The notes: generated from the letters alone by a model not told the origin. Numbered from the stretch's first letter, positions 35,562 through 54,509 are shown. The stretch is DNA of 64,000 nucleotides from Setoptus koraiensis (GCA_048013815.1 CM106585.1:19034001-19098000), one strand, 5' to 3'. Translations and numbers: made by a program.

Positions 35562-38500
35562 CGGCCGAGCTGCTAATGAACCGGTTAATTAAGTTTGTGT
35601 CTGTGCCGAAGCGCGCTCGCACAATCGCGCCTCTCGTAACGAAAGTTTCGTTTGTTTGCGTGCCCGCGCGATTCGGCTCATTTGAGCCGGCCCGATTAAA
35701 GCTCGCACTTGTTGTCGGCGAGCCAGTGTCAGCTCGAGCGCAGTCCCGGCAACCGGTGCCGCCGTTGACGTCATCGTTGTCGGTCCGCCGATGACGACGC
35801 GGACGACGCGGACGATGCGGACGATGCGGACGATGCGGACGACGCGGATGATGCTGGCGGCGCCGATGACGCAACAAGCGCTTGGAACGATGCGAATCGC
35901 TCAAACGATCCCATGGTTAATGGCCAATAATGTGACGCAACAGCAACAATTGGTTGCGTCAACAATGCCAACAGTGCATACGTGAGCTGCTGTTGGCATA
36001 CGCACGTCGCCGGCTCAACAGTTGCCCAGATATCGGCTCTGATTAGCTACCGGCGGGCGTTGCGCAACAGCGAAACGGGCCCGCTTCGCTGTTGCGCAAT
36101 AGCTGCGCTCGCCGTAATCGCCGTAATCGCTGTAATCGCCGTAATGCCAAGTGCCAAGGCAAGCTCGCCAGGCAAACAAACGGTGCGCAAACCTGAAACA
36201 ATGGCGGCCTGCGAATCGGTTAGACAGGCACTGTCAGGCGAGCCGGCACCCTCATTAAATTGGCCGCTCATTGTTGTTTGTTTTTATCCGTTTAGCCGTT
36301 TGATGTGACGCATGAAACTGGCTGGCAGGCAGCATCAGATGGCAGCCCTTTTGTTTGCCCCGTTTGTTTGCGTATGTCGAACCGAAATTGGCGTCACAGT
36401 GATGACAACGCTCACTTTACATGTGCTCGTCGCTTCACACATTCGCACTATTTCCAGTCTCGCCGCCGAGCCATCGTCAACCGTTCTCGCCGACAACTTC
36501 TCCGCTGCTCGCGGCTGTTCCGACTCGGAATCTCTGAGCGGCCGGCTCGCCTTTTCGGCTGGCAGATTTCGGCGCGACAGCGGTGCTGCTGTGCCAAAAT
36601 TTCTGCTCGGTTCGAAATTTCTGCTCGGTTCGAAATTTCTGCTCGGCGTGTTCGGCGTGTTCGGCGAGCCGATTCGACAAGCGGCGCGCCGTCGGCGCAT
36701 GCAAATTGTAACTAGTTCGAGGCCGAATCGAGCCGAGGTAACGCATTGCGTAACGCTTGGCTTGGCCCGACAAACGAGCCGCATTTGGCGGCACAATTCC
36801 GCATGTCGCCGCAATCGGCGGGCAACTGTGGCAGCCCCAGCCAAACAGCGCGCATCATGCCGTATGTCATAATTGCGTAATGATGTATAATGTTGTTGTT
36901 TAATTGTTGCTGTCATACGATCGTGTCTAGCGGGCCTCGCCGAGCAGCCAGAGACAACGCAACGCGGTAACAGCGTTTTAATTAGTTGTGGCCATATTTT
37001 GATTTGTTGCCCATTGTGCTCGCCCGCTCGCTTATCAATATAATAGCACAGCGAATTGTATCAAGAAACGGGTGATTTTTAAAGCGAACGGGCCGCAATG
37101 AATACGCAACAACATGAAACGGCACAATGAAACAAGCCAGTGGAAATGAAACGAGCTCTCATCATCCGATTCGCCCTATTGATGATCCGGCCAGGGAGCA
37201 TCTTGTTTTGAGCGCTCCCCCATCACTCATCGTGATGCTTGCGATAGCTTGATTGTCGTCGTCTTCGTCTTCGTCGTCCATTTACAAGTCATTCATTCAG
37301 TTCATTCAGTGGGCAAGTTGACGGGCTTTTTAACTGGCGAGCTAACTCATGAGCGGGCGAGCTGTTTCAAATTATCTGGCACAAACAAGCGAGCTCAAAG
37401 TCTTCATTTTCGGTCGCAACTAATGACAGAAATATTAATGCAATGCAAATATGGCGCGACAGGCTCGCCCATGCTGTCTCCGGCTGACAAGCTCGTTATA
37501 CCCGAGCTCGTTGTTGTCTCTATCCAACAATTGCTGCTCCAGCTTTGATTGATGCAATCGACGCCATATTTGTTTGTTGTTTGATCACATTTTGTTCTTG
37601 TTTAATCATATCGTTCATCGTTGCGAAGCGCCTGGCTGCGATTGTTGGCCGCTTGGCACAACAATTGCCGCTTGGCCGGCCAGATTGTTGCGATTTCTTC
37701 GGGTTCCGACGGCCCTATTGTTGTCGTCTCTCATTCCTTTTGGGGAAAGTCTCCTCCTCGCTCGTTTCACTCAAAATTGGATCGCGCTGTCGCCCGAAAA
37801 AAAAACACACGCCGATTGCAATTTGAAAGCGAAAATTTGAAAGGCAAACAGAGACTCTCTGTCAGAGAATTTGTTTGTTTCCAATAGAGTCAAACAAATT
37901 TATCAAGATCAGCCAGTAGCCGGCGAGCCGAGCTGCCAGCGCTGGCACTTTCAGTCGCGTCGAGCGCGCTAATTTATGGCCACTCTCTCTCTTTGCGGCC
38001 TAGGCAGCTTGCGCTAATCTCTCGAACGGGGGCCCTGGCATCGCGCACTTGCAAGTGCGATATAATATCAGCGCCCATACGATATCATGCCAGTTGTGTG
38101 AGACAACTATCGAATGAACCACTTCGAATGCGAGCTCTCGAAATAATAATCGAAGTCGCCAGCGAAATAATAATGACAAAATGGCGCCATGCAAATTGAA
38201 GCCGATTTGCTGTGATAGTAATTAATCGCTTGCCATCTATTATCATTATTTACAATGGCCCGAATTGATACACTAGATAAAATGCTGTGCCCATAATGAT
38301 GCCTACAACTGATACATAAATTACGTTTCTGTGTTGCGTCATCAGCAGCATTTACTCATCGGCCATAGCGTCGGCTGCCGTGGCCGGTCTGTCAGATGCA
38401 ACTTGCAACAATTATACTCGTTTTGCAATGGCTGTTCGCCCTCACGACATCGAAATCCAATAAACGACGCTGTCAAACAGCTACAGCGCCTCGGGAAGAA

Positions 38501-38768
38501 AAAACATAAAAACAAATCTTTTGTCTATCTCACCGTATCAGCTAATTTTTGTTAATTGCGCAAATGATGCAAAGCATGGTCAGACGGGTAGATTGAATGG
38601 ATTCGTTTATCTGTTTATGTTCTTGCAGGCAATTATGTACTACTGCTTGTTACACAAGCTCGATAACAGGTATTGAGACTAATGAAGACATTGTTGCACA
38701 CTGAAACTGGTTTTTATTGCTTGGGTGATACAATCAACGAATGAACGGTGATTCTTGTTGCATCAACA

Positions 38769-39101
38769 TCACTGTTTACAGCAACATATTCCCAACAGGA
38801 AGCGGCCACTGTCGACGGGCGGCTCCGGATGACGACCGTCCGAGTAGCGGGCCTCGCGACAGATTTGCTGACACTGGCCAAAAGCCTCTATGGCAACAGT
38901 GAATTGTGAATCGGCAAATTCACTGCAATTCTCGCCAATTTTCATTCCATTATCCCCATCAATTCTATCTTTTTGGACACCCATATCCAACTCTAGTTCA
39001 TCGTTGTAAAAATCGGCTGTTTCCCCATCAAAGGCCATAACTAACTCAATAGTGCATTGAGCTATAACAAGTAGACAAATAATGCGTCTTATCGAAATCA
39101 T
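38769..39101 (-). CDS. Secreted cysteine-rich peptide, copy 1 (110 aa; divergent, with an acidic spacer or pro-segment)
   Basis: Signal MISIRRIICLLVIAQCTIELVMA, acidic segment, then C-x17-C-x3-C-x24-CCC-KQ; AATAAA about 50 nt after the stop. Confidence 0.75.
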   Translation of the reverse strand: MISIRRIICLLVIAQCTIELVMAFDGETADFYNDELELDMGVQKDRIDGDNGMKIGENCSEFADSQFTVAIEAFGQCQQICREARYSDGRHPEPPVDSGRFLLGICCCKQ

Positions 39102-39813
39102 TTTCTCGCTTTTTCCCTGAAAATAAATTGTCCGAAAATTTGTTTGCTATATGAAATTTGTTTGCTATATGAAATCTGATTGCTGGTGTTCGATGAATAG
39201 GCGTCGCACTTGGAGTGATTTGCTTCGAGTGACTCAGTTTCGACTAGAAACTTTCGAGTCACGCACTGTCAGCATGCAAAAAGGTGACACAGCCAGAAAA
39301 CACGCATTTTCATGCTGATCTACTTATAGATTTTTTCATTTATATCAATAACTTTTTGTGCAGATACAATTCGATATTTGCGAGTCGTCAGGCCTACTGG
39401 AGATGAACAATGCGCAATCGAACTCACGTTTGCAACAGATTGCTGGCCGACCAGAGATAAACAGATTGCTATTTATATGACATTGTCGTACCTTAAACTT
39501 CTGAATCAAACTTTTCACTGTATTCGTGATTCAATGTGCTATAAGCACGAGAAACAAGAAAAATAGGTGCCCAAACCGAGGTAGATCGACATCAAGGTAT
39601 TCGATCGTCATCGGCGATCGGCCTCTGAGCAGAGAGCAGATATTTTTATTGTATTCATTGCAAATGTTGATTAGTGACGTAGAAATCTGTTTATTAGAGT
39701 GCAAAATAAGTAACTATATTGACAAACTAGTAATTTTTATACTTATTCTGTGCTTTTAGCAGAATGACGGAATATAATTATTCTCAGTTGCCCAATCTAC
39801 TTAATGCTCGAAC

Positions 39814-40047
39814 TCATTCTTTACAGCAGCAGAATCCTATCGTCGGCGGATATTGTCCCGCCTGGATAACTGGGGATATGCCAGTCTGGTTGAATGCTTT
39901 CATGCAACCTGTATGGCAATTACCGATATGCTGTATTTGCTGTGGGAATCCCGGTATATCTTCGCAATAATCGAATCCGGCACCGACCAAGATCAAATTG
40001 GCGCATAGAATCACGGCCAAGATCAAAGTGATATGCTTGAATATCAT
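39814..40047 (-). CDS. Secreted cysteine-rich peptide, copy 2 (77 aa)
   Basis: MIFKHITLILAVILCANLILVGAG-FDYC...GNCHTGC...IGFCCCKE; TATA at 40159-40166. Confidence 0.9.
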   Translation of the reverse strand: MIFKHITLILAVILCANLILVGAGFDYCEDIPGFPQQIQHIGNCHTGCMKAFNQTGISPVIQAGQYPPTIGFCCCKE

Positions 40048-40128
40048 TTTCTTTTTGTCGTCGAGCTTTTTAGCAAAGAATATATTGGAGGATTGTTGCT
40101 TGTATTTCGATTGTTATCTGTCTATTTC

Positions 40129-40205
40129 GAATGATATCTTAACAGAGCTTTTGCCCACTATTTATACCATGAGCGTATATTGAACAATCTACTTTTAGGT
40201 TTCAT
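40129..40205 (-). promoter_or_regulatory. Core-promoter module repeated upstream of peptide copies 2-15 (copy 2 shown): AATCTA-n4-TAGATT palindrome, TATAAATA, TCATTC Inr
   Basis: TATAAATA (plus strand TATTTATA) at 40159, 41389, 42413, 43292, 44160, 45377, 46100, 47074, 48300, 50884, 51779, 52671. Inr-like TCATT about 34 nt downstream and palindrome about 20 nt upstream in most copies. Confidence 0.8.
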
Positions 40206-41049
40206 GAATTGACACGCTGGTGCCGCCAATCACGATGCAATGAGTGACTGTGGCGCTTGTCTCTCAACGAACTCACGTTTGCAACAGATTGTTGGCCGAC
40301 TGGAGATAAACAAATTGCTATTTATATGACATTAAATGTCATAACTTAAACATTGGAATCAAACGTTTCACCGCATTCTAGATTCACTGCAGTGCTATAA
40401 GCATGAGAAACAAGAAAAATGGGCGCCAAAACCAAAGTAGATCGACACCGAGGTATTCGATCGTTATTTGCAATTGGCCTCTGAAAAATGCTGGGTTACC
40501 CCGACCCCGGGGTGACCCACGATCACTATGTCTAGGTCGTGCAGGATTGCCCGATTACAAGATGGGCCCGGCAGTCACGTTGCAATGAGTGCAATTTAGA
40601 CATTTCGCCGCATGCTTCATTCGTGGTCTATGTTTTATGTGAGAATGGAAACAGAGGAATTGAGCTTTTGTCGGAATAGTCTGACCGACAGTGAAAGATT
40701 CGATCCCTTTTTTCCACAAGTCTCTGCAAAGAATTATGAGGAGCCGAAGCATCTCTTATCTGGTTATTTTTTCACCGTTCCCAACTATCGGACGAACTCT
40801 TTTGAATTGGGTTGATGAAGGTCAATTTTATTTCATTTAGGGTTTGTTCAGTTCAGTGCTCTATGTGTTACAATTGATGAATCTTTGAATCTAGTATTCT
40901 ATCCGTTGCGAATGCTGATTAGTGATTTGGAAATGTGTTTATTAGAGTGCGAATGACTGCTAATTAGATTGACCAATTGGCATTTTTTTTTTCACTTGTT
41001 CAATGTCTTTATCCGAACGTAGAAATCTGAATATCGCAAGTTGCTCAAT

Positions 41050-41286
41050 CTACACAACATATGCACAGCAGCAAACTCCTATCATTGAGCGACGTCCTTG
41101 GATAATAGGAGCCACCCCAGTAGTGTAACGTCTCCCTCTGCAACCCGTTTTGCAATTTCCATCAAACTGTATTGAAAAGGGATATCCTGGTGTATTGTCA
41201 CATTCGTTGGCTGTGGCATAATCAACCAAGACCAAATTGATGCATAGAGCCAAACCCAAGGTCAAAATGATGCGCTCGTAAATCAT
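41050..41286 (-). CDS. Secreted cysteine-rich peptide, copy 3 (78 aa)
   Basis: Signal + ANECDNTPGYP...GNCKTGC...IGVCCCAYVV. Confidence 0.9.
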   Translation of the reverse strand: MIYERIILTLGLALCINLVLVDYATANECDNTPGYPFSIQFDGNCKTGCRGRRYTTGVAPIIQGRRSMIGVCCCAYVV

Positions 41287-42042
41287 TTTATTTTCGTGTT
41301 TTCGCCAGGTTTTTTGTCTGATTCGATTGTTATCGGTCTGCTATAGAAGATGTGGTTTGAATGATATCTTCACAGAGCCGTCGCCCAGTATTTATACGAT
41401 GAGCGCACCGATTGAGCGATCTACTTTTAGATTTTCGCTAGCGACACGTAGTAAGTTTTTATAAAATTCCTTAAAATGTCACACAATGTCTGACAGACAT
41501 CGAATTCTTTTGTGGCGCATGAATGAAACTCATTTGAATCGAATCGCCAGCGGAGCATCTTCAGACGCGGTCTGCAATACGGTGACACAGCCAAAATGCA
41601 CGCATTTTGAGGTTTATCTACATAGAGATTTGTACATTCATCAACATGGATGCCTCTCAATGTTCGCAACAGATTGTTGGCCCACTGGAAATACACAGTA
41701 TGCTATTTGTGCGACATTGAACGTCACACTTTAAACTTCGCAAACAGACCCTGCAGGGGCCCGAAACTTTCAGGCTGAAAGCATCGCCTATCTAGTTCTA
41801 TTTGGGTCCTTTCGAGCAATCAGGAGAACTCTTTTCTTTACGTAGTTTACGTACGTACGATGAATGTTAATTTTATTTCATTTTCGAATTAAGCCAGTTC
41901 AGTACATTTTGTGTGTTACAATCGACGAATCTTTGGCACTGGTGTTAGCCTGATCTTTTTATTCTATCCGTCGCGTATGATGATTTCTCTTCGGAAATGT
42001 GTGTATGAGAGCGCAAAATAATGGTGCAAGCTCAATATCTCA

Positions 42043-42303
42043 TCATAACCAATTTCTCCACCCACTCGAGGGAAAAAAATGATAAGCACAGCAGCAGATT
42101 CCTCTTACCTGCAAGCCGCTTGGTAAGCGGCCTTTATCGTATCCCTTCTCTTTGCAACCTGTGTTGCAATCCGAACCAGAATAACGAATCTCATAGAGGT
42201 ATCCTGATGTTCTGGCGCACAGGTTGGCTGCGGCATAACCAACCAAGAACAAATTGATGCAAACAACCAGGGCCAAAGCCAAAGTGACACGCTTGAACAT
42301 CAT
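42043..42303 (-). CDS. Secreted cysteine-rich peptide, copy 4 (86 aa)
   Basis: Signal + ANLCARTSGY...DCNTGCKEKGYDKG...RGICCCAYHFFPSSGWRNWL. Confidence 0.9.
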   Translation of the reverse strand: MMFKRVTLALALVVCINLFLVGYAAANLCARTSGYLYEIRYSGSDCNTGCKEKGYDKGRLPSGLQVRGICCCAYHFFPSSGWRNWL

Positions 42304-42927
42304 TTTATTTTCGTTTTTTCGTCAGGTTTTTTGTCTGATTGTCTGATGGATTGTTATCGGTCTACTACGAAAGATCTGCTTCGAATGATATCTTCACAGA
42401 GCCGCTGCCCACTATTTATACGATGAGCGCTCCGATTGAGCGATCTACTTTTAGATTTTCGCTAGCGACACGTAGTAAGTTTTTATAAAATTCCTTAAAA
42501 TGTCACACAATGTCTGACAGGCATCGAATTCTTTTGTGGTGCATGAATGAAACTCACTTGAATCGAATCGCCAGCGGAGCATCTTCAGACGCGGTCTGCA
42601 GTACGGTGACACGGTGGCAGTTGGCCCCGGAGGAAATTCGTGAGGAGACCATGCAGGAGCCTGAAAGCATCCCCTATCTAGTTCTTTTCGTGTCTTTTCG
42701 AGCAATCAGGAGAACTCTTTTCTCTACTTGTTAATTTTATTTCGTTGTTGGTTCAGTCACATTAGTTACATTTTCATATGTTGCAATGGACGAATCTTTG
42801 GAACTAGTGATAGCCAGATCTTTTTATTCTATCCATCGCATATGATGATTTCTCTTCGGAAATCTATGTATGAGAGAGCAAAATAATGGTACAAGCTCAA
42901 TATCGCAAGTTGCACAATCCACTCATC

Positions 42928-43164
42928 TTATGACGCCGTGCAGCAACAGATTCCTTTTAGCGGACGGTTGTCGTTGACTGGGGCCGCTGGGCGCACGCCA
43001 TCTCGGTAGTCGTTCAATGAGCAACCTACATGACAGTCGCCACGATAATCTATCTCAACGGGGTATCCTATTGTACCATCACATCTGCTGGCTATGGCGT
43101 AATCAACCAAGACCAAATTGATGCAAAGAACCAATGCCAAGATCAATGTGATACCTTTGAACAT
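42928..43164 (-). CDS. Secreted cysteine-rich peptide, copy 5 (78 aa)
   Basis: Signal + ASRCDGTIGYP...GDCHVGC...KGICCCTAS. Confidence 0.9.
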   Translation of the reverse strand: MFKGITLILALVLCINLVLVDYAIASRCDGTIGYPVEIDYRGDCHVGCSLNDYRDGVRPAAPVNDNRPLKGICCCTAS

Positions 43165-43812
43165 TTTCTCTTCTTTTCTCCGTCGGGCTTTTCACCAAGA
43201 ATGTTGCCAACGACTGTCGTTTGTATTTTGATCGTTATCTTTCTACTCCGAGAGATTTGCCTCAAATGATACACTTCGACCCGTCGCCCACTATTTATAC
43301 GACGAGCGTATCGATTGAGCAATCTACTTTTAGATTTTGTATCAGCGAGTCGCTGGCAGCGACCGACATTCCGACACGTTGGTGTCTGATGCGTATTTTT
43401 ATGAAATTCTTTGTCTGTCACACAATGTATGAATCATACAGACTTGCAGACATTGAGATGACGTGCATTTTTTCGACAGTACCAATCATCGACGCGACAT
43501 GGGCGACAAATGTACGTCGAAATTTTGTCAGTCGAACAAATGACCCAGACCCCTTTTTTCGCGATCTTTTCGTGTTGTTTCGAACAATCAGAAGGACTCT
43601 CCTTTTTAAATTGATGAAGCTTAATTTTATTTCGTTGTGGTTTTAGTCACATTAGTTACAGTTTCATGTGTTGCAATGGACGAATCTTTGGAACTAGTGA
43701 TAGCCAGATCTTTTTATTCTATCCATCGCGTATGATGATTTCTCTTCGGAAATCTATGTATGAGAGAGCAAAATAATGGTACAAGCTCAATATGGCAAGT
43801 TGCACAATCCAC

Positions 43813-44052
43813 TCATCCCATTGGAAACCAAAAACAGCAACACACTCCTAACAGCGGACGCATGTCTCCTGGTGGACGGATTGGGGACCTGCCACCATGG
43901 TAGCCTTCTTCCAAGCAACCTACGTAGCAATTACCAAGATAATCCAACTCGTATGGAAATCCTGGTGTATGATCACAGTGGTTTGCGCTAACCAAAACCA
44001 AATTGACGCACACAAGCAAGGCGAAGATCAATATGATTCGCTTGAATATCAT
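43813..44052 (-). CDS. Secreted cysteine-rich peptide, copy 6 (79 aa; start reassigned to ATG 44052)
   Basis: MIFKRIILIFALLVCVNLVLVSA-NHCDHTPGFP...GNCYVGC...LGVCCCFWFPMG; the start aligns with the paralogues and the TATA at 44160. Confidence 0.9.
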   Translation of the reverse strand: MIFKRIILIFALLVCVNLVLVSANHCDHTPGFPYELDYLGNCYVGCLEEGYHGGRSPIRPPGDMRPLLGVCCCFWFPMG

Positions 44053-45021
44053 GTTCTTTTCTTCTCGTCGTCCGGAATCCGGATTTTTCTCTGATTGTTC
44101 GTGTCTGACTACTCTGAGAGATTTGCTTTGAATGACACCCTCACAGAGCTGTTGGCCACTATTTATACCATGAGCGTTCCCATTTAGCAACCTTATTTTA
44201 GATTCTAAATATCGACACGTTGGTGTTCGTTGCATACTTTTCTAGAATCGTTCGCCAGGCGGCCAGTTTCCGAATGAATCGAACATTGCGTTTGCTGAGA
44301 CGAAGTGGGAACGTGTACGATAGTGACACGATGGTGCCGCCAGTCACGTTGCAGTGACTGATCCCCAGCAATTGTCTCTCATGGAACTCACTAGAATAGA
44401 CATTTCCAGTAAATCATCTCTTTCGCTCATTCTGCAATGCGGGAACGCAACCAAAAGAACGATCTACATTAACAAGATTGCGTTTATGTGAAACTATATA
44501 CGTGGATACCTCTCAAGTTGAGAGTCTCAACAGATTGTTGACCTGCTAGAGACAAACAGTCTGCTATTCATGCCACAGTAAATGTCATATCTTAAACTTT
44601 GCAATAAGTCAGACATTTGGCCGCATTCTTGATTCAATGCGCATCATGCCTGACAAATGAGAAGAGGAGCGGCCCACAGAGAAGTAGATCGACACCCAGG
44701 CGCTAGATCGTTGTTCACAATCGGCCTCAGGCCAGTTTATGGCGGGCCCCTGTAAAGGGCCGAAAATCTCAGGGCCAAAAAAATTTCATCTAATTATTTT
44801 TTTATCGCCTCAAATTATCATAACAACTCTTTGCTTCAGATTGAGTTGACGAACGCTACTTTTATTTTATTTTGGGTCAAGTCAGCTGCATACAATTTTA
44901 TGTGTCACACTAGGCGAATCGCTAGATCTAGATCTAGCCAGTGCCTTTTGATTTTGTTCGTAGCGAATGTTGATTGATTCATCATCAGGGCTCAAAATAA
45001 TGGTGCAAGCTCAATATCCAC

Positions 45022-45267
45022 TCATCCACTCGTGGGAATGTAATGATGAGCACAGCAGCAGATTTTTGTTGTCGGCAGGCCTATTGGTGAGCGGCCTTTA
45101 TCGTATCCCTTCTCTTTGCAACCTGTTTTGCAATTAGAACCAGAATTACGAATCTCATAGGGGTGTCCTGGTGTGCTGGCGCACAGGTTGGCTGCGGCGT
45201 AACCAACCAAGAACAAATTGATGCAAACAACCAGGGCCAAAGCCAAAGTGACACGCTTGAACATCAT
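45022..45267 (-). CDS. Secreted cysteine-rich peptide, copy 7 (81 aa)
   Basis: Signal identical to copy 4; ...NCKTGCKEKGYDKG...KICCCAHHYIPTSG. Confidence 0.9.
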   Translation of the reverse strand: MMFKRVTLALALVVCINLFLVGYAAANLCASTPGHPYEIRNSGSNCKTGCKEKGYDKGRSPIGLPTTKICCCAHHYIPTSG

Positions 45268-45756
45268 TTTATTTTCGTTTTTTCGTCAGGTTTTTTGTCT
45301 GATTGTCTGATGGATTGTTATCGGCCTACTACGACAGATCTGCTTCGAATGATATCTTCACAGAGCCGCTGCCCACTATTTATACGATGGGCGCACCGAT
45401 TGAGCGATCTACTTTTGGATTTTCTCTAGCGACACGTTGTAAGTTTTTATAACAATTCCTTGTCTGTCACACAATGTCTGGCAGACAACATACATGTGCT
45501 GTATGCATGAAAAACAGAAAGAGAAATAGGCGCTCAAAGAGGAGTGAATTGACAGCAAGCTATTCGTTCATTGCTGCTAATTGTTCTCCGAGAAAATTCG
45601 TGAGAACAAATTACCGGAAGAACTCTGTTCGTTAAATTGGGTTGATGACGACTAATTTTATTTCAATTTGAGGTTCAATCATCTCAGTGCAGTCCGTCCA
45701 TAACAAATATTAATTGGTCTGTGTATTAGAGCGCAATATGATGGAGCAATCTAAAT

Positions 45757-45984
45757 TTAGCCCCCGGCATGCTTGCTACAGCAGCAGACTTTGCACGGGG
45801 CTGGGCCGCGTTTGCCATCATAGTAGTCGTTCTCTATGCAAGCGATTCGGCAATCACGGGCAAAAATGTGTAACACATATGGGTATCCTGGCATATTATC
45901 ACACGCGCTGGGATAAGCATAACCTACCAAGACCAAATTGAGGCTCAGAACTAAGGCCACGATCAAAGAGATATGCCTGGACAT
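45757..45984 (-). CDS. Secreted cysteine-rich peptide, copy 8 (75 aa, 7 mature Cys)
   Basis: MSRHISLIVALVLSLNLVLVGYA-YPSAC...DCRIAC...PAPCKVCCCSKHAGG. Confidence 0.85.
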   Translation of the reverse strand: MSRHISLIVALVLSLNLVLVGYAYPSACDNMPGYPYVLHIFARDCRIACIENDYYDGKRGPAPCKVCCCSKHAGG

Positions 45985-46695
45985 TATTTTCGTTTCTTTT
46001 TGTCGTTGCGCTTCTTCTCCGACTGTTTGTATCTCGATAGCTATTTGTCGACCTTGAGAGATTTAATTCGAATGATGTCCTCACACAACTGTTGCTCACT
46101 ATTTATACGACATAGATTTATTGACATTTATCGGGCAACCTACTTTTAGATTTTATATATCGACACGCTAGTGTAAGGCACACGATGGTGTCAGCAGTCA
46201 CGAGTGATTTCGGGCGATTGTCTCTCATAAAAGTCAATAGAATCGACATGGCATTCTGATCATTCTGTGATGCTGTGACGCAACTGAAAGAACGCGCAGC
46301 TTCGGGCTAGTCTACGATCTATAGATTTGTGCGTTCACATGGATGCCCCTCGATGCTTGCAACAGATTGTCAGCCAACTAGAGATGAACAATATGCTATC
46401 TGTGTGACAGTAGATGTCGTCGATATTCGATCATCATTGGCAATGTCCCCTGAAAAGATTGGTGCACTTGTAAAGGGCCGAAAGCATATCTCATCTAAAG
46501 TCAAGTTTTTATCGTTTCGAACTATCGAATGAACTCTCTTCGCTAAGTTGGGTTGATGAATGTTGATTTTATTTAGTCTAGGCTTTGTTCAGTTCAGTGC
46601 ATTTTTACGCGCCATAAATATTGATCGGGTCTGTGTATTATCTATCAATTATCAATGGCAAAATAATGGAGCCATCTCAATTTCGCCTAATTCCG

Positions 46696-46944
46696 TTATC
46701 CCATGGGATAACCACTACAGCAGCAAACTCCCAACAGCGGACGTCTCCAGTGATGTGGTGGGCGGACTGGGGCCCTGCCAGCAAGGTAGCCGCTCTCTTC
46801 GCAACCTGTATCGCAATTACCGAAATAATCTAACTCATACGGGAATCCTGGTGTGTGATCACACTCGTTGGCTATGACGTAACCAATCAAGATCAAATTG
46901 AAGAATGCAGCCAAGACCACGATCAAAGTGATACTCTTGAACAT
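46696..46944 (-). CDS. Secreted cysteine-rich peptide, copy 9 (82 aa)
   Basis: Signal + ANECDHTPGFP...GNCDTGC...LGVCCCSGYPMG. Confidence 0.9.
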   Translation of the reverse strand: MFKSITLIVVLAAFFNLILIGYVIANECDHTPGFPYELDYFGNCDTGCEESGYLAGRAPVRPPHHWRRPLLGVCCCSGYPMG

Positions 46945-47585
46945 TTTCTTTTCTTTTCGTCGTAGAGCTCTCTACCAGGAATATTCCCGATCACTTTTAT
47001 TTGTTTTCCGGTTGTTATTTGTCTACTCTGATGGATCTAGTTCGAATGATATCTCCACAAAACAGTTGCCTACTATTTATACGATGCGAGCATCTGTTGG
47101 CCAACCCTATTTTAGATTTCATATATTGACACGTTGGTGTTTTTTCCGCGTTTTTCTAGAATCATTCGCCAGGGGGCTAGATTACCGACAGATAATGAAC
47201 ACTGCGTTCTTTGGAACGCAGTATTCATTATTCGTCATATTTCTGCAAATAAAGGCGTGCAGGATTGTGGTAGTCACGTTGCAATGAGTGATTTTGGGCG
47301 GCATCGATTGTCTCCCATGAAAACCATAGAATCGAAATTGCCACGGGATCATCTTTCTAGTCATTCTGGAATGTGCATTCATTTGATGCTATCCGCGTGG
47401 ATAACCCTCGATGCTTGCAACAGATTGTTGGCCGGCAAGAAATGAACATCATGCTATTTGTGTGACATTGAATGTCATACTTTAAACATTGAAATCAGAC
47501 ATTTCGCCGCATCCTCAATTCAATTCGCTATATGCATGACAAACAAGAAGAATAGGGGCCCAAATCAAAATAGATCAACAGCGAG

Positions 47586-47675
47586 TATAGTTGTAGCAAA
47601 TTTGTAATTTGCACAGTGCAAATTGGCACAGGAATGAATTTGCACTCTGCAAATTACAAATTTGCTACAACTATA
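47586..47675. mobile_element. 90-bp fold-back MITE (non-autonomous DNA transposon) with 39-bp inverted arms and an 8-bp TSD
   Basis: Arms 47586-47624 and 47637-47675 are reverse complements with one mismatch. Direct repeat ACAGCGAG at 47578-47585 and 47676-47683. Paralogous spacers carry a single 8-mer at this site (ACACCGAG at 40445-40452). Confidence 0.85.
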
Positions 47676-47926
47676 ACAGCGAGTTATTCGATCGCTGTTA
47701 ACAATCGGCCCCAGTCAAGGGCCAAAAGGATATTTTATCTCCATCTTTTCGTGTCGTTTAGAAATTTGATTTTATTCGATTTTGGGTCTGATCAGTTGGC
47801 ACATTTTCACGTGATGCAACGAACGAACATTCGGATCCAGCGATAGCCAAATCTTTCTATTCTATCCATTGCAAATGTATCAATGTAACTATGGGCAATT
47901 TAACTATCGCAAGTTACCCGATCTAC

Positions 47927-48172
47927 TCATCCCATAAGAAAATCTCCACAGCAGCAGATCCTTCTTATCGGACGCCTATCATCTTCGTCAACGATCGGTG
48001 GTACGCCATCCATGTAGTCCCATAATTGGCAACCCCATCGGCAATTACCAGCATAATATATCTCAACGGGGTATCCTGGTGTATTATCACATCTGTTGGC
48101 TATGGCGTAATCAACCAAGACCAAATTGACGCAAAGAACTAGGGCCAAGATCAATGTGATACCTTTGAACAT
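47927..48172 (-). CDS. Secreted cysteine-rich peptide, copy 10 (81 aa)
   Basis: Signal + ANRCDNTPGYP...GNCRWGCQLWDYMDG...RRICCCGDFLMG. Confidence 0.9.
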   Translation of the reverse strand: MFKGITLILALVLCVNLVLVDYAIANRCDNTPGYPVEIYYAGNCRWGCQLWDYMDGVPPIVDEDDRRPIRRICCCGDFLMG

Positions 48173-48821
48173 TTTCGCTTCTTTTTTCCGTCGGGCTTTT
48201 CACCAAGAATGTTGCCAACGACTGTCGTTTGTATTTTGATCGTTATCTTTCTACTCCGAGAGATTTGCCTCAAATGATATACTTCAACCTGTCGCCCGCT
48301 ATTTATACGATGAGCGTACATTGAGCAATCTACTTTTAGATTTTATGTATCGACACGCTGGTGTTTGTTGCATATTTTCTTAAAGTTCATTTTCTGTCAC
48401 ACAGTGTCTGACTGACACCCAGCATTGTATTCGCTGCGAGGATTGTCAGGCGTGCACGTTCACATGAAAAGCAAGAAAAATACTGGCCTCAGGGAATTAT
48501 TCAATCATTTTAGGCAATCATCCCTGATAAAATTTGTGTTGTGCAAAGGGTTCAAAGCATTTTTTCTGGATCTTCTTGGAGAGTTTTTCTGATTGTTTAG
48601 AACAATCAGAAAAGAACTCTCGTATTTAAATTGGTTTTATTCAATTTTGGGTCTGGCCAGTCGATACATTTTCACTTGTTGAAATGGACGAATATTTGGA
48701 TCCAGCAATAGCCAGATCTTTTTATTCGATCCATGGCAAATGTTTATTGTTCTGCTAGAAATCTGTGTATCAGAGGACAGAAAGATTGGGCTATGTAACT
48801 ATCGCAAGTTATTCAATCTAC

Positions 48822-49067
48822 TCATCCCATAGGAAAATCTCCACAGCAGCAGAATCCTCTCAGCGCTCGCCTTTCCCCTTCTGCGCGGATTGGTTCTACG
48901 CCATCCATGTAGTCCCATAATTGGCAACCAAATCGGCAATTACCACGATAATATATCTCAACGGGGTATCCTGGTGTAGCATCACATCTATTGGCCATGG
49001 CATAATCAACCAGGATTAAATTGACGCAAAGAACCGAGACCAAGATCGAAGTGATACTCTTGAACAT
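48822..49067 (-). CDS. Secreted cysteine-rich peptide, copy 11 (81 aa)
   Basis: Signal + ANRCDATPGYP...GNCRFGC...RGFCCCGDFPMG; the TATA box is mutated. Confidence 0.88.
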   Translation of the reverse strand: MFKSITSILVSVLCVNLILVDYAMANRCDATPGYPVEIYYRGNCRFGCQLWDYMDGVEPIRAEGERRALRGFCCCGDFPMG

Positions 49068-49712
49068 TTTCTTTTCTTTTTGTTGTAGGGCTTTTTACTA
49101 AGAATATACCTAACGACTATTGCCTGTATTTCGATTGTTATCTGTCTTTTCTGAGAGATCTGCCTCGTATCACACACTCAGAGCTATTTCCAACTATTTT
49201 TACGATGAATCTACTTTTAGGTTTCATATATCACGTTTTTGTTTGATGTACATTTTTATAAATTTCGTGATTGTCACGAAGTATATGACTGACATCCAGC
49301 ATTGTATTCGCTGGTGGTATTGTAAGGCGCATACACGTATGAACGAAAAGCAAGAAAAATACGGGCCCCGGCGAAGTATTCAATCATTTTAGGCAATCTA
49401 CCACTGAAGAAAAAAATAGCGGGGTGCCTCTGTAGAGGGTCAAAAGAATCTTTTTTCTCGATATTTTCGTGTCGTTTCGAACGATCAAAAGAACTCTCGT
49501 TTTTGAATTAGGTTAATGAAATTTGATTCTATTCAATTTTGGATCTATCCAGTCGATACATTTTCACTTGTTGAAATGGATGAATCTTTGGATCCAGCAA
49601 TAGCCAGATCTTTTTATTCTATCCATTGCAAATATTGATTGGTCCGCTGGAAATATGTGTATTGGGGGTCAAAAAAATGGGCAATGTAACTATCACAAGT
49701 TACCTAATCTAC

Positions 49713-49964
49713 TCATCCCATGTGAAAATCGCCACAGCAGCAGATTCCTAACATCGCACGCCTGTCTCCGATTCCACGGACTGCGGGCACACCATCTTGG
49801 TAGTCCCATCTTTGGCAACCGTCTCGACAATTACCAACATAATATATCTCAACGTTGTATCCTGGTGTATTATTACATCTGTTGGCTGTGGCGTAACCAA
49901 CCAAGGCTAAATTGACGCATAGAACCAGAACCAAGATCGAAGTGATACCCTTGAACATCATCAT
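49713..49964 (-). CDS. Secreted cysteine-rich peptide, copy 12 (83 aa)
   Basis: Signal + ANRCNNTPGY...GNCRDGC...LGICCCGDFHMG; the TATA box is disrupted. Confidence 0.88.
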   Translation of the reverse strand: MMMFKGITSILVLVLCVNLALVGYATANRCNNTPGYNVEIYYVGNCRDGCQRWDYQDGVPAVRGIGDRRAMLGICCCGDFHMG

Positions 49965-50518
49965 TTCTTTTTATTGTAAGACGTTTTACTATGAATATTC
50001 CAAACAACTATTGCCTGTATTTCGATTGTTATCTGTCTCTTCTCTGAAAAATCCGCCTCGAATAATGCGCACAGAGCTGTTGTCCAGTATGATAATGGCA
50101 GTATCTGAACGATGAGTGCTCCAATCGAGCAATCTACTTTTAGATAGCATATATCGACACGTTGGTGTTTGTTGCCTATTTTTATAAAATACCTTGTTTG
50201 TCACGCAGTATATGACTGACATCCATCATTCCATTCGCAGGCAGCATTGTCAGGCGTGTACGTATGAATGAAAAGCAAGAAAAATACGGGCCCCCAGTGA
50301 AATCATTTTAGGCAATCTGCCTCTGACAAAAAAAATGCGGGGTGCCTCTGTAGAGGGTCAAAAGAATCTTTTTTCTCGATCTTTTCGAACAATCGGAGGA
50401 ACTATTCTATTCAAATTGGGTTGATGAAGGTTAATTTTATTTCATTTTGCGTTCTGTCAGTTCAGTACATTTTTATGTGCTGAGTTAGAGCAATCAGGGC
50501 TCAAAATAATGGCCCAAT

Positions 50519-50758
50519 CTAGATCAAGCTACAGCAACAGACTCCCAATCGCGGACGCATGTCTCCGGCTGGACGCACTGGATAATCTCCATCAGCGTAA
50601 TGATTCTCAAGGCAACCCTCTCGGCAATTACCAAGATAGTCTAGCACGTAGGGGTATCCTGGTGTGTGTTCGCAATCGTTGGCCATGGCGTAACCAATCA
50701 AGGCCAAGTTGACGCACAAAACCACGGCAAAGATCAGAGTGATATGCTTGAACATCAT
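50519..50758 (-). CDS. Secreted cysteine-rich peptide, copy 13 (79 aa)
   Basis: Signal + ANDCEHTPGYP...GNCREGC...LGVCCCSLI. Confidence 0.9.
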   Translation of the reverse strand: MMFKHITLIFAVVLCVNLALIGYAMANDCEHTPGYPYVLDYLGNCREGCLENHYADGDYPVRPAGDMRPRLGVCCCSLI

Positions 50759-51399
50759 TTTCTTTTTGTCGTCGGACTTTTTACCAAGAATATTCCTAAC
50801 GTGTGTTGTTTGTATTTCGAACAGTTATCGGTCTACTATGAAAGATCTACTTCGAATGATGTCTCCGCAGAACTTGCCCCCTCTATTTATACGATGAGCC
50901 TATCGATTGAGCAACCTACTTTTAGACTATGTACCCGCGCTCGACATGCCGACACGTAGGTGTCTGGTGTGTATTTTTATAAAATTCATTGCCTGTCTCA
51001 CGATGTATGAGTCAGACAGTCTGACAGATGCTGAGCAGCGCATCGGCCGGGAGGAAAGTCATGCGTGTACGTATAAACGGAGAGCAAGAAAAACAAGAGA
51101 ACTCAGCAAAGTATTCGAAAATTTTAAGCAATCAGCCTCCGAAAAAATTTGTGCGTTGCGAGGCCCTTTTTTCCAAATCTTTTCGAGTTGTTTCGAACAA
51201 TCAGAAAAACTCTCGTATCTAAATTGGGTCAATGAAATTTGATTTTATTCAATTTTGTGTCTAGTCAGTGGGTACATTTTCACGTGTTGCAACGAACGAA
51301 CATTTGGATCCAGCGATAGCCAGATGTTTCTATTCTATCCGTCGCAAATGTATCAATGTAACTATGGGCAATGTAACTATCGCAAGTTACCCGATCTAA

Positions 51400-51651
51400 T
51401 CATCCCATAAGAAAATCTCCGCAGCAGCAGATACCTCTTAACGGGCGCGGGTCATCTTCGTCAGGGATCGGTGGTACGCCATCCATGTAGTCCCATAATT
51501 GGCAACCCCATCGGCAACCCATATAACCAATATAATATATCTCAGCGGGGTATCCTGGTGTATTATCGCATCTGTTGGCAATGGCGTAATCAACCAAGAC
51601 CAAATTGACGCAAAGAACCAGTGCCAAGATCAATGTGATACCTTTGAACAT
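51400..51651 (-). CDS. Secreted cysteine-rich peptide, copy 14 (83 aa)
   Basis: Close paralogue of copy 10; ...GCRWGCQLWDYMDG...RGICCCGDFLMG. Confidence 0.9.
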   Translation of the reverse strand: MFKGITLILALVLCVNLVLVDYAIANRCDNTPGYPAEIYYIGYMGCRWGCQLWDYMDGVPPIPDEDDPRPLRGICCCGDFLMG

Positions 51652-52298
51652 TTTCGCTTCTTTTTTCCGTCGGGCTTTGCACCAAGAATGTTGCCAATGA
51701 CTATCGTTTGTATTTTGATTGTTTTCTGTCTACCCCGAGAGATCTGCCTCAAATGATACACTTCAACCTGTCGCCCGCTATTTATACGATGAGCGTACAT
51801 TGCGCAATCTACTTTTAGATTTTATGTATCGACACGCTGGTGTTTGTTGCATATTTTCTTAAAGTTCATTTTCTGTCACACAGTGTCTGACTGACACCCA
51901 GCATTGTATTCGCTGCGAGGATTGTCAAGCGTGTACGTATAAATGCAGAGCAAGAAAAACAAGAGAACTCAGCAAAGTATTCGAAAATTTTAAGCAATCA
52001 GCCTCTGAAAAAATTTGTGCGTTGCGAAGCACTTTTTTCTAAATCTTTTCGAGTTGTTTAGAACAACCAGAAGCACTCTCGTATTTGAATTGGTTTAATG
52101 AAATTTGATTTTATTCATTTTTGGGTCTAGCCAGTCGATACATTTTCACTTGTTGAAACGGACGAATCTTTGGATGCAGCGATAGCCAGATCTTTTCATT
52201 CTATCCATTGCAAATGTTGAATGATCTGCTTGAAATCTGTGTATCAGAGGACAAAAAGATCGGGCTATGTAACTATCGCAAGTTACCCAATTTACTTG

Positions 52299-52544
52299 TT
52301 AGCCCATGAAAAAATCTCCACAGCAGCAGATCCCTCTTATCGGACGCCTGTCATCTTCTAGACGGATTGGTTCTACGCCATGTTGGTAATCGGCTAATTG
52401 GCAACCTACACGACAGTCACCTAGCCAGTGTATCTCAACGCTGTATCCTGGTGTATCATCACATCTGTTGGCCATGGCGTAATCAACCAGGATTAAATTG
52501 ACGCAAAGAACCAGGGCCAAGATCAATGTGATACTTTTGAACAT
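52299..52544 (-). CDS. Secreted cysteine-rich peptide, copy 15 (81 aa; start reassigned to ATG 52544)
   Basis: MFKSITLILALVLCVNLILVDYAMA-NRCDDTPGY...GDCRVGC...RGICCCGDFFMG. Confidence 0.9.
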   Translation of the reverse strand: MFKSITLILALVLCVNLILVDYAMANRCDDTPGYSVEIHWLGDCRVGCQLADYQHGVEPIRLEDDRRPIRGICCCGDFFMG

Positions 52545-52854
52545 TTTCTCTTTTTTTTTTTCCTTTTTTTCGGGCTTTTTACCAAGAATGTTCCTAATGA
52601 CTATTGTGTGTATTTTGATTGTTTTCTGTCTACTCCGAGAGATTTGCCTCAAATGATACACTCAGACCACTATTTATACGATGAGCGTACATTGAGGAAT
52701 CTACTTTTAGATTTTATGTATCGACACGCTGGTGTTTGTTGCATATTTTCTCAAAATTCCTTTCCTGTCACATAGTGTCTGGCTGGCATCGAAGGTCCGA
52801 AAGCATCTTTTACCTGGATCCCTTATCGCTTCGTTACGAACAATCGTAGGAATC

Positions 52855-53005
52855 GTCGCAGAGCTGGCGCCCACTGTTTATACGCTGAACGTATATGGAG
52901 CAATCTACTTTTAGATCTATTTTGTGCCCGCAACAACAGACATGCCGACACGTTGGTGTGTGATGGATATTTTTGTAAAATTTCTTGTCTATCACGCTGT
53001 GCTCG
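52855..53005 (-). pseudogene. Orphan copy of the peptide-gene promoter module with no coding unit downstream
   Basis: TATAAACA (52875-52882), caatctacttttagat palindrome and cgacacgttggtg block are present. The sequence downstream is spacer-type, with no Inr, leader or ORF. Confidence 0.6.
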
Positions 53006-54509
53006 ACACGCTTTATGTGAGATATGTTCAGACATTGAGCGTCTGAATGAGTAATTTCGGGCGATTGTTTCCCATGAAACTCACTCGAATCGGTCTTGAT
53101 CGTGTGTATTATCGCGCTATTTCAGCAACAATATAGAGTGTTTGCAACTGTCTGACTGGATAAATTGTTGCGGATAAATACAAGAGAAATGTCGCTATTT
53201 ATATCACGACCATCATCATCAAAATTCATGCCGCGTTTATGGCCGCGGCCACAATGACACGGCAAACCGGGGGCCCGGGCCCGCGGACACAATTCTCGGA
53301 TGAATCATTGGACATTATTAGATTGTAGAGTGGATCATTGTGACGATTATTGCGTTAGTGGGGGCCAGTTTTCAGTGGCAGTGCCACCAGGGCGCTCAAA
53401 TCACTGGCCGCGTGATACAATTTGGCCATCGCATCAGCCGTATAACACAATTTGACCATCGCAGCGGCCGTATAACGCAATGGGCCCCGTTTGTGTCTGC
53501 GGGGGCGTTCCACTTGAGGCGACAAAATTGATGTCTTTATCGGAAAATGATCACACACACACACACACACACATAGTATATGTGTAATATCCAGGCAACG
53601 TGTCATTTTCCAATCATGGCCACGAGCATTTAGCGCCAGAAGCACGACGACCTGTCCAGCAATCCATCAACGAGATGAGGCCGCCGATGGGATAATTTGA
53701 GTGGGCCCGGCGATAAAATTTTCTCGCCGCTATTGCTGGCCGCTATTGCCCGCCACCGAACTGGCCGAATTGGCCGAACTGGCCGAAATGGCCCGGTTTG
53801 GGGCCGCTCGGGAGCCGGCGCCACTGGGCGACATTTGTCGGAATGGGCCCGGCGGGAGGCCCATTTCGGGTTGAGTTTAAAACGAATCAAGCACAACCGA
53901 GCGCCCACTTAAGCCCCATTTAATGCGCGCCTCGGCCGCGCTGCATTCCGACGGCACACTAATCAGGCCGGCCGAGGTGCGAGCTCATTGTTTTGCAGGG
54001 GCCCCGCGACCGCCCCATTGTGCCGCTGGCTGCCGTTTGGTGCCGCTCCGTCGCTCGGTCCGGTGTTCGGGGGCGCCGGTCGGCGCGCGACACCAAACAA
54101 AGGCTTTGCAACTCATCAAGTTTCATTCTGTGCCACGTACCATCGTCATCAATTGGCACGTGATGAGAATTTGCATGCGACAATTGAGTTGTTTGGCGCG
54201 TGCATCGTGCCTCGTTGCGAGCGATTTTGCGCCAACGAGGTTGCGGGCGATTTTGCGCCAGCGAGTTTGCTCGGGCCCAAATTCAATTGTCATTACGGCC
54301 ATATCACCGGACTATATCATTTTGGTGTAATTTTAGTTTCAAGTGGGCGGCTCGCATTGTTCGCACCCTCTGGTGGACGGTGCAGGCGCGATTTATGAAC
54401 TGCCAACGGAAGCAACAATGACCGGCGCGATATGAATATGATTATCCGTGATATATGTGACTGCTTATGGGGGCGCCAGGGTCGAGCCCGATCGACCGCG
54501 CCAGCACAT

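Follow-up and report, generated by a model that had tools for sequence, protein, structure and literature searches.

Fifteen small genes in the stretch of Setoptus koraiensis DNA that we analysed (64,000 nucleotides; hereafter the window) very probably constitute a lineage-restricted family of secreted peptides with a three-disulfide cis-defensin (CSαβ) fold, amplified in tandem into 15 mini-genes. Our leading guess for their role is host defence of the drosomycin and plant-defensin kind. We offer this role tentatively, at somewhat less than an even chance, and regard the combined account of the array, with the role included, as evenly balanced.

Organization of the array

The array consists of 15 intact open reading frames (ORFs) encoding 75–110 amino acids each, all head-to-tail on the minus strand between positions 38769 and 52544 (Table 1), with the starts of neighbouring ORFs 717–1239 bp apart. 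A tblastn search of the window with all 15 peptides matched exactly these 15 loci, and no additional, broken or fragmentary copies were found in it. The GC content is 0.40–0.43 in the array as compared with 0.52–0.57 and 0.59 in the flanks. The lower bound of the array was set at the AATAAA signal about 50 nt past the stop codon of copy 1 and the upper bound at the distal motif of an orphan promoter module. The reading frames of copies 6 and 15 remain open further upstream; their starts were placed at 44052 and 52544 because of the alignment of the conserved 5′ UTRs and the position of the initiator. A longer copy 6 ORF (to 44235) begins upstream of the predicted initiator and was therefore discarded. 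A lachesin-like gene neighbours the array and is matched slightly best by chelicerates, mites included, at about 36–39% identity.

Table 1. Transcription units and promoter elements of the array, in window coordinates.
Feature	Length (aa)	Coordinates	Strand	TATA block	Distal motif	Remarks
Whole array		38713..52915	-			15 transcription units and an orphan promoter module at the upstream end
Copy 1	110	38769..39101	-			signal peptide, ~33-residue acidic pro-region, six-Cys domain
Copy 2	77	39814..40047	-	40155-40168	40185-40199	
Copy 3	78	41050..41286	-	41385-41398	41417-41431	
Copy 4	86	42043..42303	-	42409-42422	42441-42455	
Copy 5	78	42928..43164	-	43288-43301	43320-43334	
Copy 6	79	43813..44052	-	44156-44169	44188-44202	C-terminal Gly
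Copy 7	81	45022..45267	-	45373-45386	45405-45419	C-terminal Gly
Copy 8	75	45757..45984	-	46096-46109	46136-46150	C-terminal Gly
Copy 9	82	46696..46944	-	47070-47083		C-terminal Gly
Copy 10	81	47927..48172	-	48296-48309	48326-48340	C-terminal Gly; model reference
Copy 11	81	48822..49067	-	49191-49204	49207-49221	C-terminal Gly
Copy 12	83	49713..49964	-		50130-50144	C-terminal Gly
Copy 13	79	50519..50758	-	50880-50893	50912-50926	
Copy 14	83	51400..51651	-	51775-51788	51805-51819	C-terminal Gly
Copy 15	81	52299..52544	-	52667-52680	52697-52711	C-terminal Gly
Orphan 16th promoter module		52871..52915	-			TATA-like block and distal motif; upstream edge of the array

Units 2–15 have a common upstream module in which a distal conserved motif is followed by a TATA box. 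The frequency of this module is far above chance: the distal 15-mer was matched 14 times against 0.14 expected, and the TATA block 15 times against 0.85 expected, with one of the latter matches (at 24069) lying outside the array. Within the array, all matches are on the minus strand. A canonical TATA box with an arthropod-type initiator about 32 nt downstream is present in 12 of the 15 copies, the count being 12 because these elements are degenerate or lost in copies 1, 11 and 12. Copy 1, the outlier of the family, lacks the shared TATA module and has a degenerate distal motif. The core promoter of copy 11 is weakened, with two mismatches in the TATA block and no initiator match at the expected site, and copy 12 has lost both the TATA block and the initiator, yet its ORF is intact. 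The distal motif of copy 9 has diverged by more than two mismatches. No kappaB-like motif was found in the conserved promoters of the array.

The predicted 5′ UTRs are 76–110 nt long and the start context is A-rich. An AATAAA signal lies 50–185 nt past the stop codon in every unit; in copy 10, for example, it lies 150 nt past the stop and the initiator 103 nt upstream of the ATG. The coding sequence of each unit is uninterrupted, and an intron within the 5′ UTR is unlikely because the TATA box and initiator sit so close to each ATG. From their sequence, the units look like autonomous mini-genes. No ORF lies behind the orphan promoter module, and tblastn with the 15 peptides detected no peptide remnant there.

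The first-pass annotation had described 15 intact head-to-tail minus-strand ORFs of 75–110 residues at about 1-kb spacing, each with a signal peptide and one exact cysteine framework, and all of this was reproduced here, the signal peptides by a rule-based assessment (see below). Its term intronless holds for the coding sequence. The upstream module that it assigned to 14 of the 15 genes is indeed found in units 2–15, but with diverged or lost elements in copies 9, 11 and 12.

Features of the predicted precursors

Signal peptides were assigned by rule, using a basic n-region, the hydropathy of the core and the residues at positions −3 and −1. All 15 N-termini are signal-peptide-like, with K or R near the start and a 12-residue hydrophobic core of mean Kyte-Doolittle hydropathy 2.7–3.1. 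In most copies, small residues at −3 and −1 (e.g. A-I-A or A-M-A) stand directly before the first framework cysteine. The product would enter the secretory pathway and shed a signal peptide of about 23–27 residues.

The framework C-x15-17-C-x3-C-x17-25-CCC is invariant in all 15 copies, and its C-x3-C and CCC elements are also kept in three relatives. Copy 8 has seven cysteines in its mature part and each of the other 14 copies has six. The scaffold residues (Cys, Gly, Tyr and Pro) are fixed across the peptides and the last strand is constant, while variability is concentrated in the loops and the tail. The net charge of the mature part ranges from −5 to +4, being negative in 10 copies, neutral in one, +3 in copy 3 and +4 in copies 4 and 7; copy 4 also has a long C-terminal tail. 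Nine of the 15 copies end in Gly, seven of them with the sequence aromatic-x-Met-Gly. As a C-terminal Gly is the usual amide donor for C-terminal amidation, these nine products would be fit for that modification.

Selection and divergence

The array genes are under selection: in 86 of the 91 paralogue pairs non-synonymous change falls below synonymous change, and an orthologue, the tandem arrangement and the core promoter are conserved in a second species. The pairwise dN/dS values among paralogues are mostly 0.2–0.5, and synonymous divergence reaches more than 1 per site with all 15 frames still intact. The second species (Logan run SRR33593474) retains two tandem members, together with the exact TATA block and the initiator; the orthologue of copy 1, P0002, is 71% identical with a dN/dS of 0.27. 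The initial proposal of a secreted disulfide-rich peptide gene family is upheld.

Signal peptides stay alike and mature parts diverge fast. Between copies 4 and 7, dN/dS rises from 0 for the signal part to 1.28 for the mature part, and copies 3 and 4 are 91% identical in the promoter and only 57% in the mature part. The closest paralogues are copies 10 and 14, with 91% amino acid identity. Identity between units is mosaic: copies 5 and 14 show 96% identity over the signal part and 64% over the mature part, and the 3′ flank of copy 5 is 91% identical to that of copy 6. We propose that the array evolved by birth and death and that its units also exchanged sequence by recombination or gene conversion, which would explain why promoters and signal peptides are alike when the mature parts diverge.

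Sequence searches and predicted fold

None of the 15 copies matched a defensin, thionin, scorpion-toxin or plant DEFL/SCR-like family of Pfam-A at the gathering cut-off. The sole Pfam match fell short of the threshold (PF24552 Defensin-like, copy 4, 12 bits where 27 are required), and the other copies matched no such family at E values up to 10. Neither the array profile nor single copies matched PDB sequences at E up to 10, and at the same limit nothing in Pfam or the PDB sequences linked the peptides to a plant family by sequence. Among about 15 billion predicted proteins, the only relatives were two from one sequencing run; the public protein collections that we searched did not contain the peptides of the window itself.

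The structures of copies 10 and 7, which are 43% identical, were predicted by AlphaFold from a shallow alignment of the 15 sequences, with pLDDT values of 84.4 and 76.7, respectively. Both models have the order strand-helix-strand-strand (residues 11–14, 19–25, 30–32 and 47–51 of mature copy 10); the helix carries the CxxxC and the last strand the CCC. When the models were compared with the PDB by Foldseek, nearly all of the top 40–45 matches for both were CSαβ proteins, among them the plant defensins NsD7 and NaD1, ARD1/heliomicin, drosomycin, scorpion K+ and Na+ toxins and a flea salivary channel antagonist, although no match reached significance for either model (best E 0.42–0.63, TM about 0.35–0.68). 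In cis-defensins, two parallel disulfides tie the helix to the sheet and sequences are very diverse (PMC11561630). The cysteine-stabilised helix (CSH) motif, defined by a helix CxxxC and final-strand cysteines at i and i+2 (PMC11561630), is present in both the sequences and the models.

We inferred the disulfide pairing from motif geometry alone. The helix C-x3-C would be bonded to the first and third cysteines of CCC, forming the classic CSH/CSαβ staple, and the N-terminal cysteine would pair with the middle one in a manner resembling the bridge that joins the N- and C-termini in drosomycin and plant defensins. Variability is found on the exposed face of the helix, in the long loop between strands 2 and 3 and in the C-terminal tail, and these may provide the target-binding surfaces.

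The family had been put forward as a candidate undescribed one, with a hint at plant defensin-like peptides. By sequence it has no named counterpart in Pfam, the PDB sequences or the roughly 15 billion proteins, but its fold class is well known; the hint holds for the predicted fold, through non-significant Foldseek neighbours, and not for the sequence.

Possible roles of the peptides

As host-defence peptides, the products would act outside the cell by binding components of microbial envelopes, mainly those of fungi. Antimicrobial defensins are mostly cationic, and the mostly acidic mature parts would count against this role, as would the missing kappaB-like motif in the promoters.

The same molecules could instead be exocrine gland effectors, delivered in saliva or venom into a plant, prey or host, where the variable loop and amidated tail would attach to a receptor, ion channel or defence component. 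We consider this unlikely, though a serious contender: the mostly acidic or neutral mature peptides, the conserved signal peptides ahead of fast-diverging mature parts, the confinement of the family to one lineage and the conserved promoters without a kappaB-like motif all agree with it, scorpion toxins and the flea salivary channel antagonist, both CSαβ, are among the Foldseek matches, and the conserved aromatic-x-Met-Gly ending of seven copies hints at a tail that is amidated and under functional constraint. However, pairwise dN/dS is not usually greater than 1 but lies mostly at 0.2–0.5, and no toxin family profile was matched.

Signalling or reproductive peptides, whether seminal-fluid, egg-surface, pheromone-like or symbiont-controlling, would have their targets within the species or among its resident microbes. 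Families of that kind are likewise clustered, fast-evolving and limited to single lineages, the C-terminal Gly of nine copies fits a regulated secretory pathway, and aphids have cysteine-rich peptides that control symbionts (PMC9604261). The sequence holds no specific pointer to such a function, and we regard it as distinctly improbable.

It is very unlikely that the family is of plant defensin-like kind, whether taken over from a host plant or imitating the peptides of one. The copy 10 model does match plant defensins best, and a plant-to-ecdysozoan origin has been discussed for drosomycin-type peptides (PMC9751787), but insect and scorpion peptides have the fold equally, the promoter, initiator and start context are of arthropod type, and six cysteines with a CCC replace the eight of plant defensins. 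Mimicry of plant peptides, as first suggested, is unsupported because the searches of Pfam and the PDB sequences at E up to 10 brought up no similar plant family. Finally, a decaying or non-coding tandem repeat with ORFs open by chance, to which the damaged core promoters of copies 11 and 12 and the absence from public collections might point, can be dismissed almost with certainty in view of the intact frames despite high synonymous divergence, the six invariant framework cysteines, the prevalence of dN below dS and the conserved orthologue in the other species.

Comparison with known CSαβ peptides

Host defence remains our leading guess, and the peptides may be compared with four groups of the CSαβ superfamily. 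With classical arthropod (insect and tick-type) defensins they have in common the superfamily, a signal-peptide precursor and three disulfides. Those defensins have no N-terminal strand and follow the pattern C...CxxxC...C...CxC, with a separate fourth cysteine in strand 2 and then CxC, whereas the array pattern is C...CxxxC...CCC with a strand predicted before the helix. Given this different framework, the predicted strand and the lack of a Pfam defensin match at the cut-off, assignment to this group was rejected.

Scorpion CSαβ toxins (agitoxin 2, kaliotoxin, BmKTX and the long-chain Na+ channel toxins) share the CSαβ core with the array models, to which they gave the highest target-normalised TM scores (0.58–0.68), and they too are multigene, fast-diverging and secreted. 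In contrast, the array peptides match no toxin profile, are longer than the K+ toxins, are mostly acidic and have other cysteine spacing.

Plant defensins (NaD1, NsD7, NoD173 and gamma-thionins) were the best Foldseek matches of the copy 10 model, with E values of 0.6–3, TM of only 0.34–0.49 and no sequence match. The order of secondary structure is the same, and the array peptides would, like plant defensins, have a disulfide between the N-terminus and the region of the C-terminal strand. They differ in that plant defensins contain eight cysteines, while the array peptides have six with CCC and are encoded in an arthropod genome behind arthropod-type core promoters.

From the drosomycin type of antifungal peptides the array peptides are set apart by the lack of significant sequence or profile similarity, a much longer loop of about 14 residues between strands 2 and 3, a Gly tail in many copies and acidity in most. 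Drosomycin-type peptides, like plant defensins, are characterized by eight cysteines in four disulfides, and the array has six, three of them contiguous, or seven in copy 8. Since three-disulfide members of the drosomycin type are known (PMC9751787), the six-cysteine count lowers the likelihood of membership without excluding it. Drosomycin-type peptides form multigene families, with seven members in Drosophila, where the genes are intronless, and 15 cremycins (PMC9751787). Drosomycin of Drosophila and the cremycins of Caenorhabditis remanei are, like the array products, small, secreted and encoded in clustered multigene families. Drosomycin and the insect antifungal defensins heliomicin and ARD1 (variants) were among the top Foldseek matches of the copy 7 model, at 27–35% identity over 31–45 columns. 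All of them have an N-terminal strand before the helix in a strand-helix-strand-strand order, with the CxxxC of the helix stapled to the last strand, as predicted for the peptides of the array.

Organization of the array and its transcription units

The first-pass annotation had described 15 head-to-tail minus-strand ORFs at about 1-kb spacing, each with an intact frame, a signal peptide and the framework C-x15-17-C-x3-C-x17-25-CCC, and the array agreed with this description on every point. The ORFs encode 75–110 amino acids, have start-to-start distances of 717–1239 bp and are numbered as copies 1–15 by rising coordinate. The in-frame ORFs of copies 6 and 15 continue further upstream, and their starts were set by aligning the 5′ UTRs and by the position of the predicted initiator. 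Signal peptides were judged by rule: all 15 N-termini are basic and then strongly hydrophobic, with small residues at −3 and −1 in most copies. The framework is present in 15 of 15 copies, and its six cysteines plus one glycine are the only invariant positions of the mature peptides. When all 15 peptides were used in a tblastn search of the 64-kb window, exactly these 15 loci were matched, with no fragments or broken copies. The GC content of the array is low (0.40–0.43) and its flanks are GC-richer.

Units 2–15 are homologous from end to end over about 0.9 kb each. Upstream of the ORFs, a distal motif occurs 14 times in the window versus 0.14 occurrences expected by chance. About 30 bp beyond it in gene orientation is a TATA block, with 15 occurrences in the window versus 0.85 expected; those inside the array are all minus-strand matches, and one of the 15 lies outside it. 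An arthropod-type initiator (TCATT-like) is found about 32 nt past the TATA, followed by a 5′ UTR of 76–110 nt that closes with an A-rich start context, an uninterrupted ORF, and an AATAAA 50–185 nt past the stop, the alignment position of which is conserved in most units. Because of this whole-unit homology, the promoter elements, the uninterrupted ORF and the AATAAA, the units are compact, self-contained transcription units. The genes had been called intronless, which is demonstrated for the coding sequence only.

It had also been claimed that 14 copies share an upstream promoter module. A homologous module is indeed present in units 2–15, but it is degraded in three of them: the distal motif has diverged in copy 9, the TATA is weakened and the initiator absent in copy 11, and both the TATA block and the initiator are lost in copy 12. 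The ORFs of copies 11 and 12 are intact, and these two copies may be silenced at the promoter level though apparently still under coding constraint. Copy 1, the outlier of the family, has an upstream region of its own with a degenerate distal motif. An orphan module, some 200 bp upstream of the module of copy 15, marks the upstream end of the array and probably remains from a 16th unit that was lost or never completed. The conserved promoter region contains no kappaB-like motif, and a GATA-like site within it is not universal among the units. The distal motif, which we take to be reminiscent of a MEF2-type site, did not match the pattern of such a site.

Features of the window and of the related contigs L001 and L002 from a second species
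Feature	Position	Strand	Remarks
Lachesin-like, GPI-type immunoglobulin adhesion gene	3426-6009	-	at least 5 exons, short introns, compact
281-aa ORF	13282-14127	+	signal-peptide-like start, then acidic, Lys-rich and His/Tyr/Asp-rich low-complexity runs
TATA-block match outside the array	24069
Non-coding blocks conserved between species	37155-38328		74-100% identical to L001 2115-3329
Exact conserved block	37888-37920		33 nt
Peptide gene array, copies 1-15	38769-52544	-
Start of copy 6	44052	-
Promoter region of copy 11	49068-49260	-
Promoter region of copy 12	49965-50200	-
Start of copy 15	52544	-
Orphan module	52871-52915	-	TATA-like block plus distal motif, no ORF behind
Upstream flank	53400-64000		sharp GC rise (about 0.42 to 0.55-0.61) at the array's upstream edge
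Short tandem repeats, several, upstream flank	53417-53481, 54214-54270, 54518-54664
Repeat-derived ORFs	near 57.7 kb and 62.1 kb
Short family member on L001	305-541
Short family member on L002	172-405

Selection and evolution of the array

All 15 frames have stayed open despite synonymous divergence between copies that reaches more than 1 per site. In the mature part, non-synonymous change is lower than synonymous change in 86 of 91 pairs, with a median uncorrected ratio of 0.71 and Jukes-Cantor-corrected dN/dS values that are mostly 0.2–0.5. The young pair of copies 4 and 7 has a dN/dS of 0 for the signal peptide and of 1.28 for the mature peptide. Variability peaks at exposed helix positions, the post-helix loop, the long loop between strands 2 and 3 and the C-terminal tail. 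Fixed elements are the last strand and a few Gly, Tyr and Pro positions.

The copies show a mosaic pattern of identity. Copy 5 shares 96% identity with copy 14 in the signal-peptide part and 64% in the mature part, and in the 3′ flank it shares 91% identity with copy 6. Copies 3 and 4 are 91% identical in the promoter and 57% in the mature part. Recombination or gene conversion between units, atop birth-and-death evolution, would be expected to produce such a pattern.

Relatives in a second species

An exhaustive search of 1.84 billion representative proteins with a HMMER profile of the 15 peptides returned two relatives only, P0001 and P0002. Word-indexed profile searches of 5.8 billion clusters gave the same two in the first instance and P0001 alone in the second. 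Both relatives come from a single public sequencing run, Logan SRR33593474. One contig of this run, L001, is genomic and carries a tandem pair of family members, co-oriented and separated by about 1 kb, of which the second is orthologous to copy 1 (71% protein identity, 75% DNA identity, dN/dS 0.27). The upstream member has a TATA block identical letter for letter and an unchanged initiator distance, and a TATA-like box and initiator are retained on the other contig, L002. In view of these relatives, we conclude from sequence comparison that the family is genuine, that at least two related species have conserved it and that it is not seen elsewhere. Public assemblies searched for an exact match to copy 10 had no record of it, and no family member was found in JGI metagenome contigs with the orthologue pair as query.

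The short members on L001 and L002 are closer to the mature domain of copy 1 than to copies 2–15, and share with it a ...SDG-basic-H-P-... stretch; different sub-lineages have therefore expanded in each species. The conserved blocks adjoin the array on its downstream side and likewise lie downstream of the copy 1 orthologue on L001. They are not coding, since their tblastx matches fall in several frames, many with stops. A hairpin RNA was rejected as an explanation of the 33-nt block, as the second species does not conserve the arm of the hairpin that was predicted in the window.

Genomic neighbourhood

The lachesin-like gene is the sole recognisable neighbour of the array, and a Pfam scan of 20 flanking ORFs matched only two of its exons. 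Its best relative is 53% identical (Logan run SRR18067306). Named matches are from chelicerates and insects at 30–39% identity, the best being from horseshoe crabs, spiders and acariform mites with 36–39% identity overall; one exon is 75% identical in two mites. On this evidence the host is an arthropod and probably a chelicerate of a thinly sampled lineage, the identities being too low to assign a narrower taxon. The signal-peptide exon of the gene was not located. Nesting of the array in an intron of this gene was ruled out because the gene is compact within its own interval.

The 281-aa ORF may encode a histidine-rich secreted protein or be open by chance, and its sole Pfam match, a weak one to Nop53, was caused by compositional bias. 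No Pfam domain was detected in the tested ORFs of the upstream flank, and tRNA and Rfam searches of the window gave no match.

Predicted fold of the peptides

No family in Pfam-A matched the full-length or mature peptides. A sub-threshold score, 12 bits versus a cut-off of 27, was that of one copy to PF24552 'Defensin-like'. PDB sequences gave no match at E up to 10, either to the profile or to single copies. Taken with the searches of representative proteins and clusters, these results agree with the earlier statement that the family was not recognised among named arthropod peptides; a strong match to a characterised family was looked for and not found in the collections searched.

The mature peptides of copies 7 and 10, which are 43% identical, were modelled with AlphaFold2 from a shallow alignment, with pLDDT values of 76.7 and 84.4, respectively. 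Both models run strand, helix, strand, long loop, strand, with CxxxC in the helix and CCC in the last strand. A Foldseek search of the PDB gave no significant match for either model (best E 0.42 and 0.63). Among the top 40–45 matches of both, which are individually non-significant, nearly all were proteins of the cysteine-stabilised alpha/beta (CSαβ) fold. These included the plant defensins NsD7, NaD1 and NoD173, gamma-thionins, ARD1/heliomicin, drosomycin, scorpion K+ and Na+ channel toxins and a scorpion defensin.

Alternate residues of a beta strand point to the same side, and so the first and third Cys of CCC would be expected to pair with the helix CxxxC in the classic staple. The N-terminal Cys would then be bonded to the middle Cys of CCC. 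In cis-defensins, which show extreme sequence diversity, a helix is tied to the sheet by two parallel disulfides (PMC11561630). Based on the models, we predict that the array family looks and works like a defensin-fold peptide family. We rejected membership in the protease-inhibitor, knottin and CHH-like hormone families, as no Pfam model of theirs matched and the predicted strand-helix-strand-strand order is not that of their folds.

Possible roles

The array supplies secretory-type precursors with a fixed scaffold and variable surfaces, under strong TATA-plus-initiator promoters repeated many times. The signal peptide would be cleaved and three disulfides formed. The C-terminus may be amidated, since nine copies end in Gly, seven of these in aromatic-x-Met-Gly. 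An extracellular target would presumably be bound through the variable loop, the helix face and the tail.

Arrays of cysteine-rich peptides are usually the sign of an arms-race interface, be it in immunity, feeding or reproduction. Host defence is the role we would tentatively propose, with a little less than even confidence, because the closest structural neighbours are peptides of antifungal or antimicrobial kind and because drosomycin-type peptides, too, are encoded by clustered multigene families, which in Drosophila lack introns (PMC9751787). That the peptides are gland effectors, in saliva or venom, is a doubtful alternative; it would suit their net charge, which ranges from −5 to +4 and is negative in 10 of 15 and zero in one, their constrained, putatively amidated tail and conserved promoters free of kappaB-like motifs. 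A signalling or reproductive role appears clearly unlikely. Very improbable is a structurally new defensin-fold sub-class that a mite-like arthropod delivers into a plant, a prey animal or a host and that acts there by engaging a receptor or by mimicking the recipient's defensin-like signalling peptides. It would combine three disulfides, a contiguous CCC serving helix staple and N-terminal bridge together, a long variable loop and a putative Met-amide tail; such mimicry of another organism's signals would, if true, heighten the importance of the array. Mimicry of plant peptides, raised in the first-pass annotation, or transfer from plants is hardly credible, as no plant family is linked to the peptides by sequence and their genes carry regulatory signals of an arthropod kind. 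That the array is a dead repeat can be all but ruled out.

Comparison with known families

Arthropods commonly have lineage-specific arrays of cysteine-rich secreted peptides, and for this reason we consider the array a useful addition and not a surprise. Because its ORFs are short, this 14-kb block of 15 selected genes is absent from the public protein collections searched, where none of the window's own peptides was found. If the array family does have the predicted fold, a C...CxxxC...CCC layout can hold a defensin fold together while undetected by curated profiles, and the array adds a case to the debate on the spread of CSαβ peptides among ecdysozoans. The putative bond between the N-terminal Cys and the middle Cys of CCC resembles the N-to-C bridge of plant defensins and drosomycin. 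However, the peptides fail every sequence-based test of membership in the drosomycin, plant-defensin, classical arthropod-defensin and scorpion-toxin families, and their cysteine layout, six Cys with three contiguous, is unusual. It is on these two grounds that we place the array family outside the named families.
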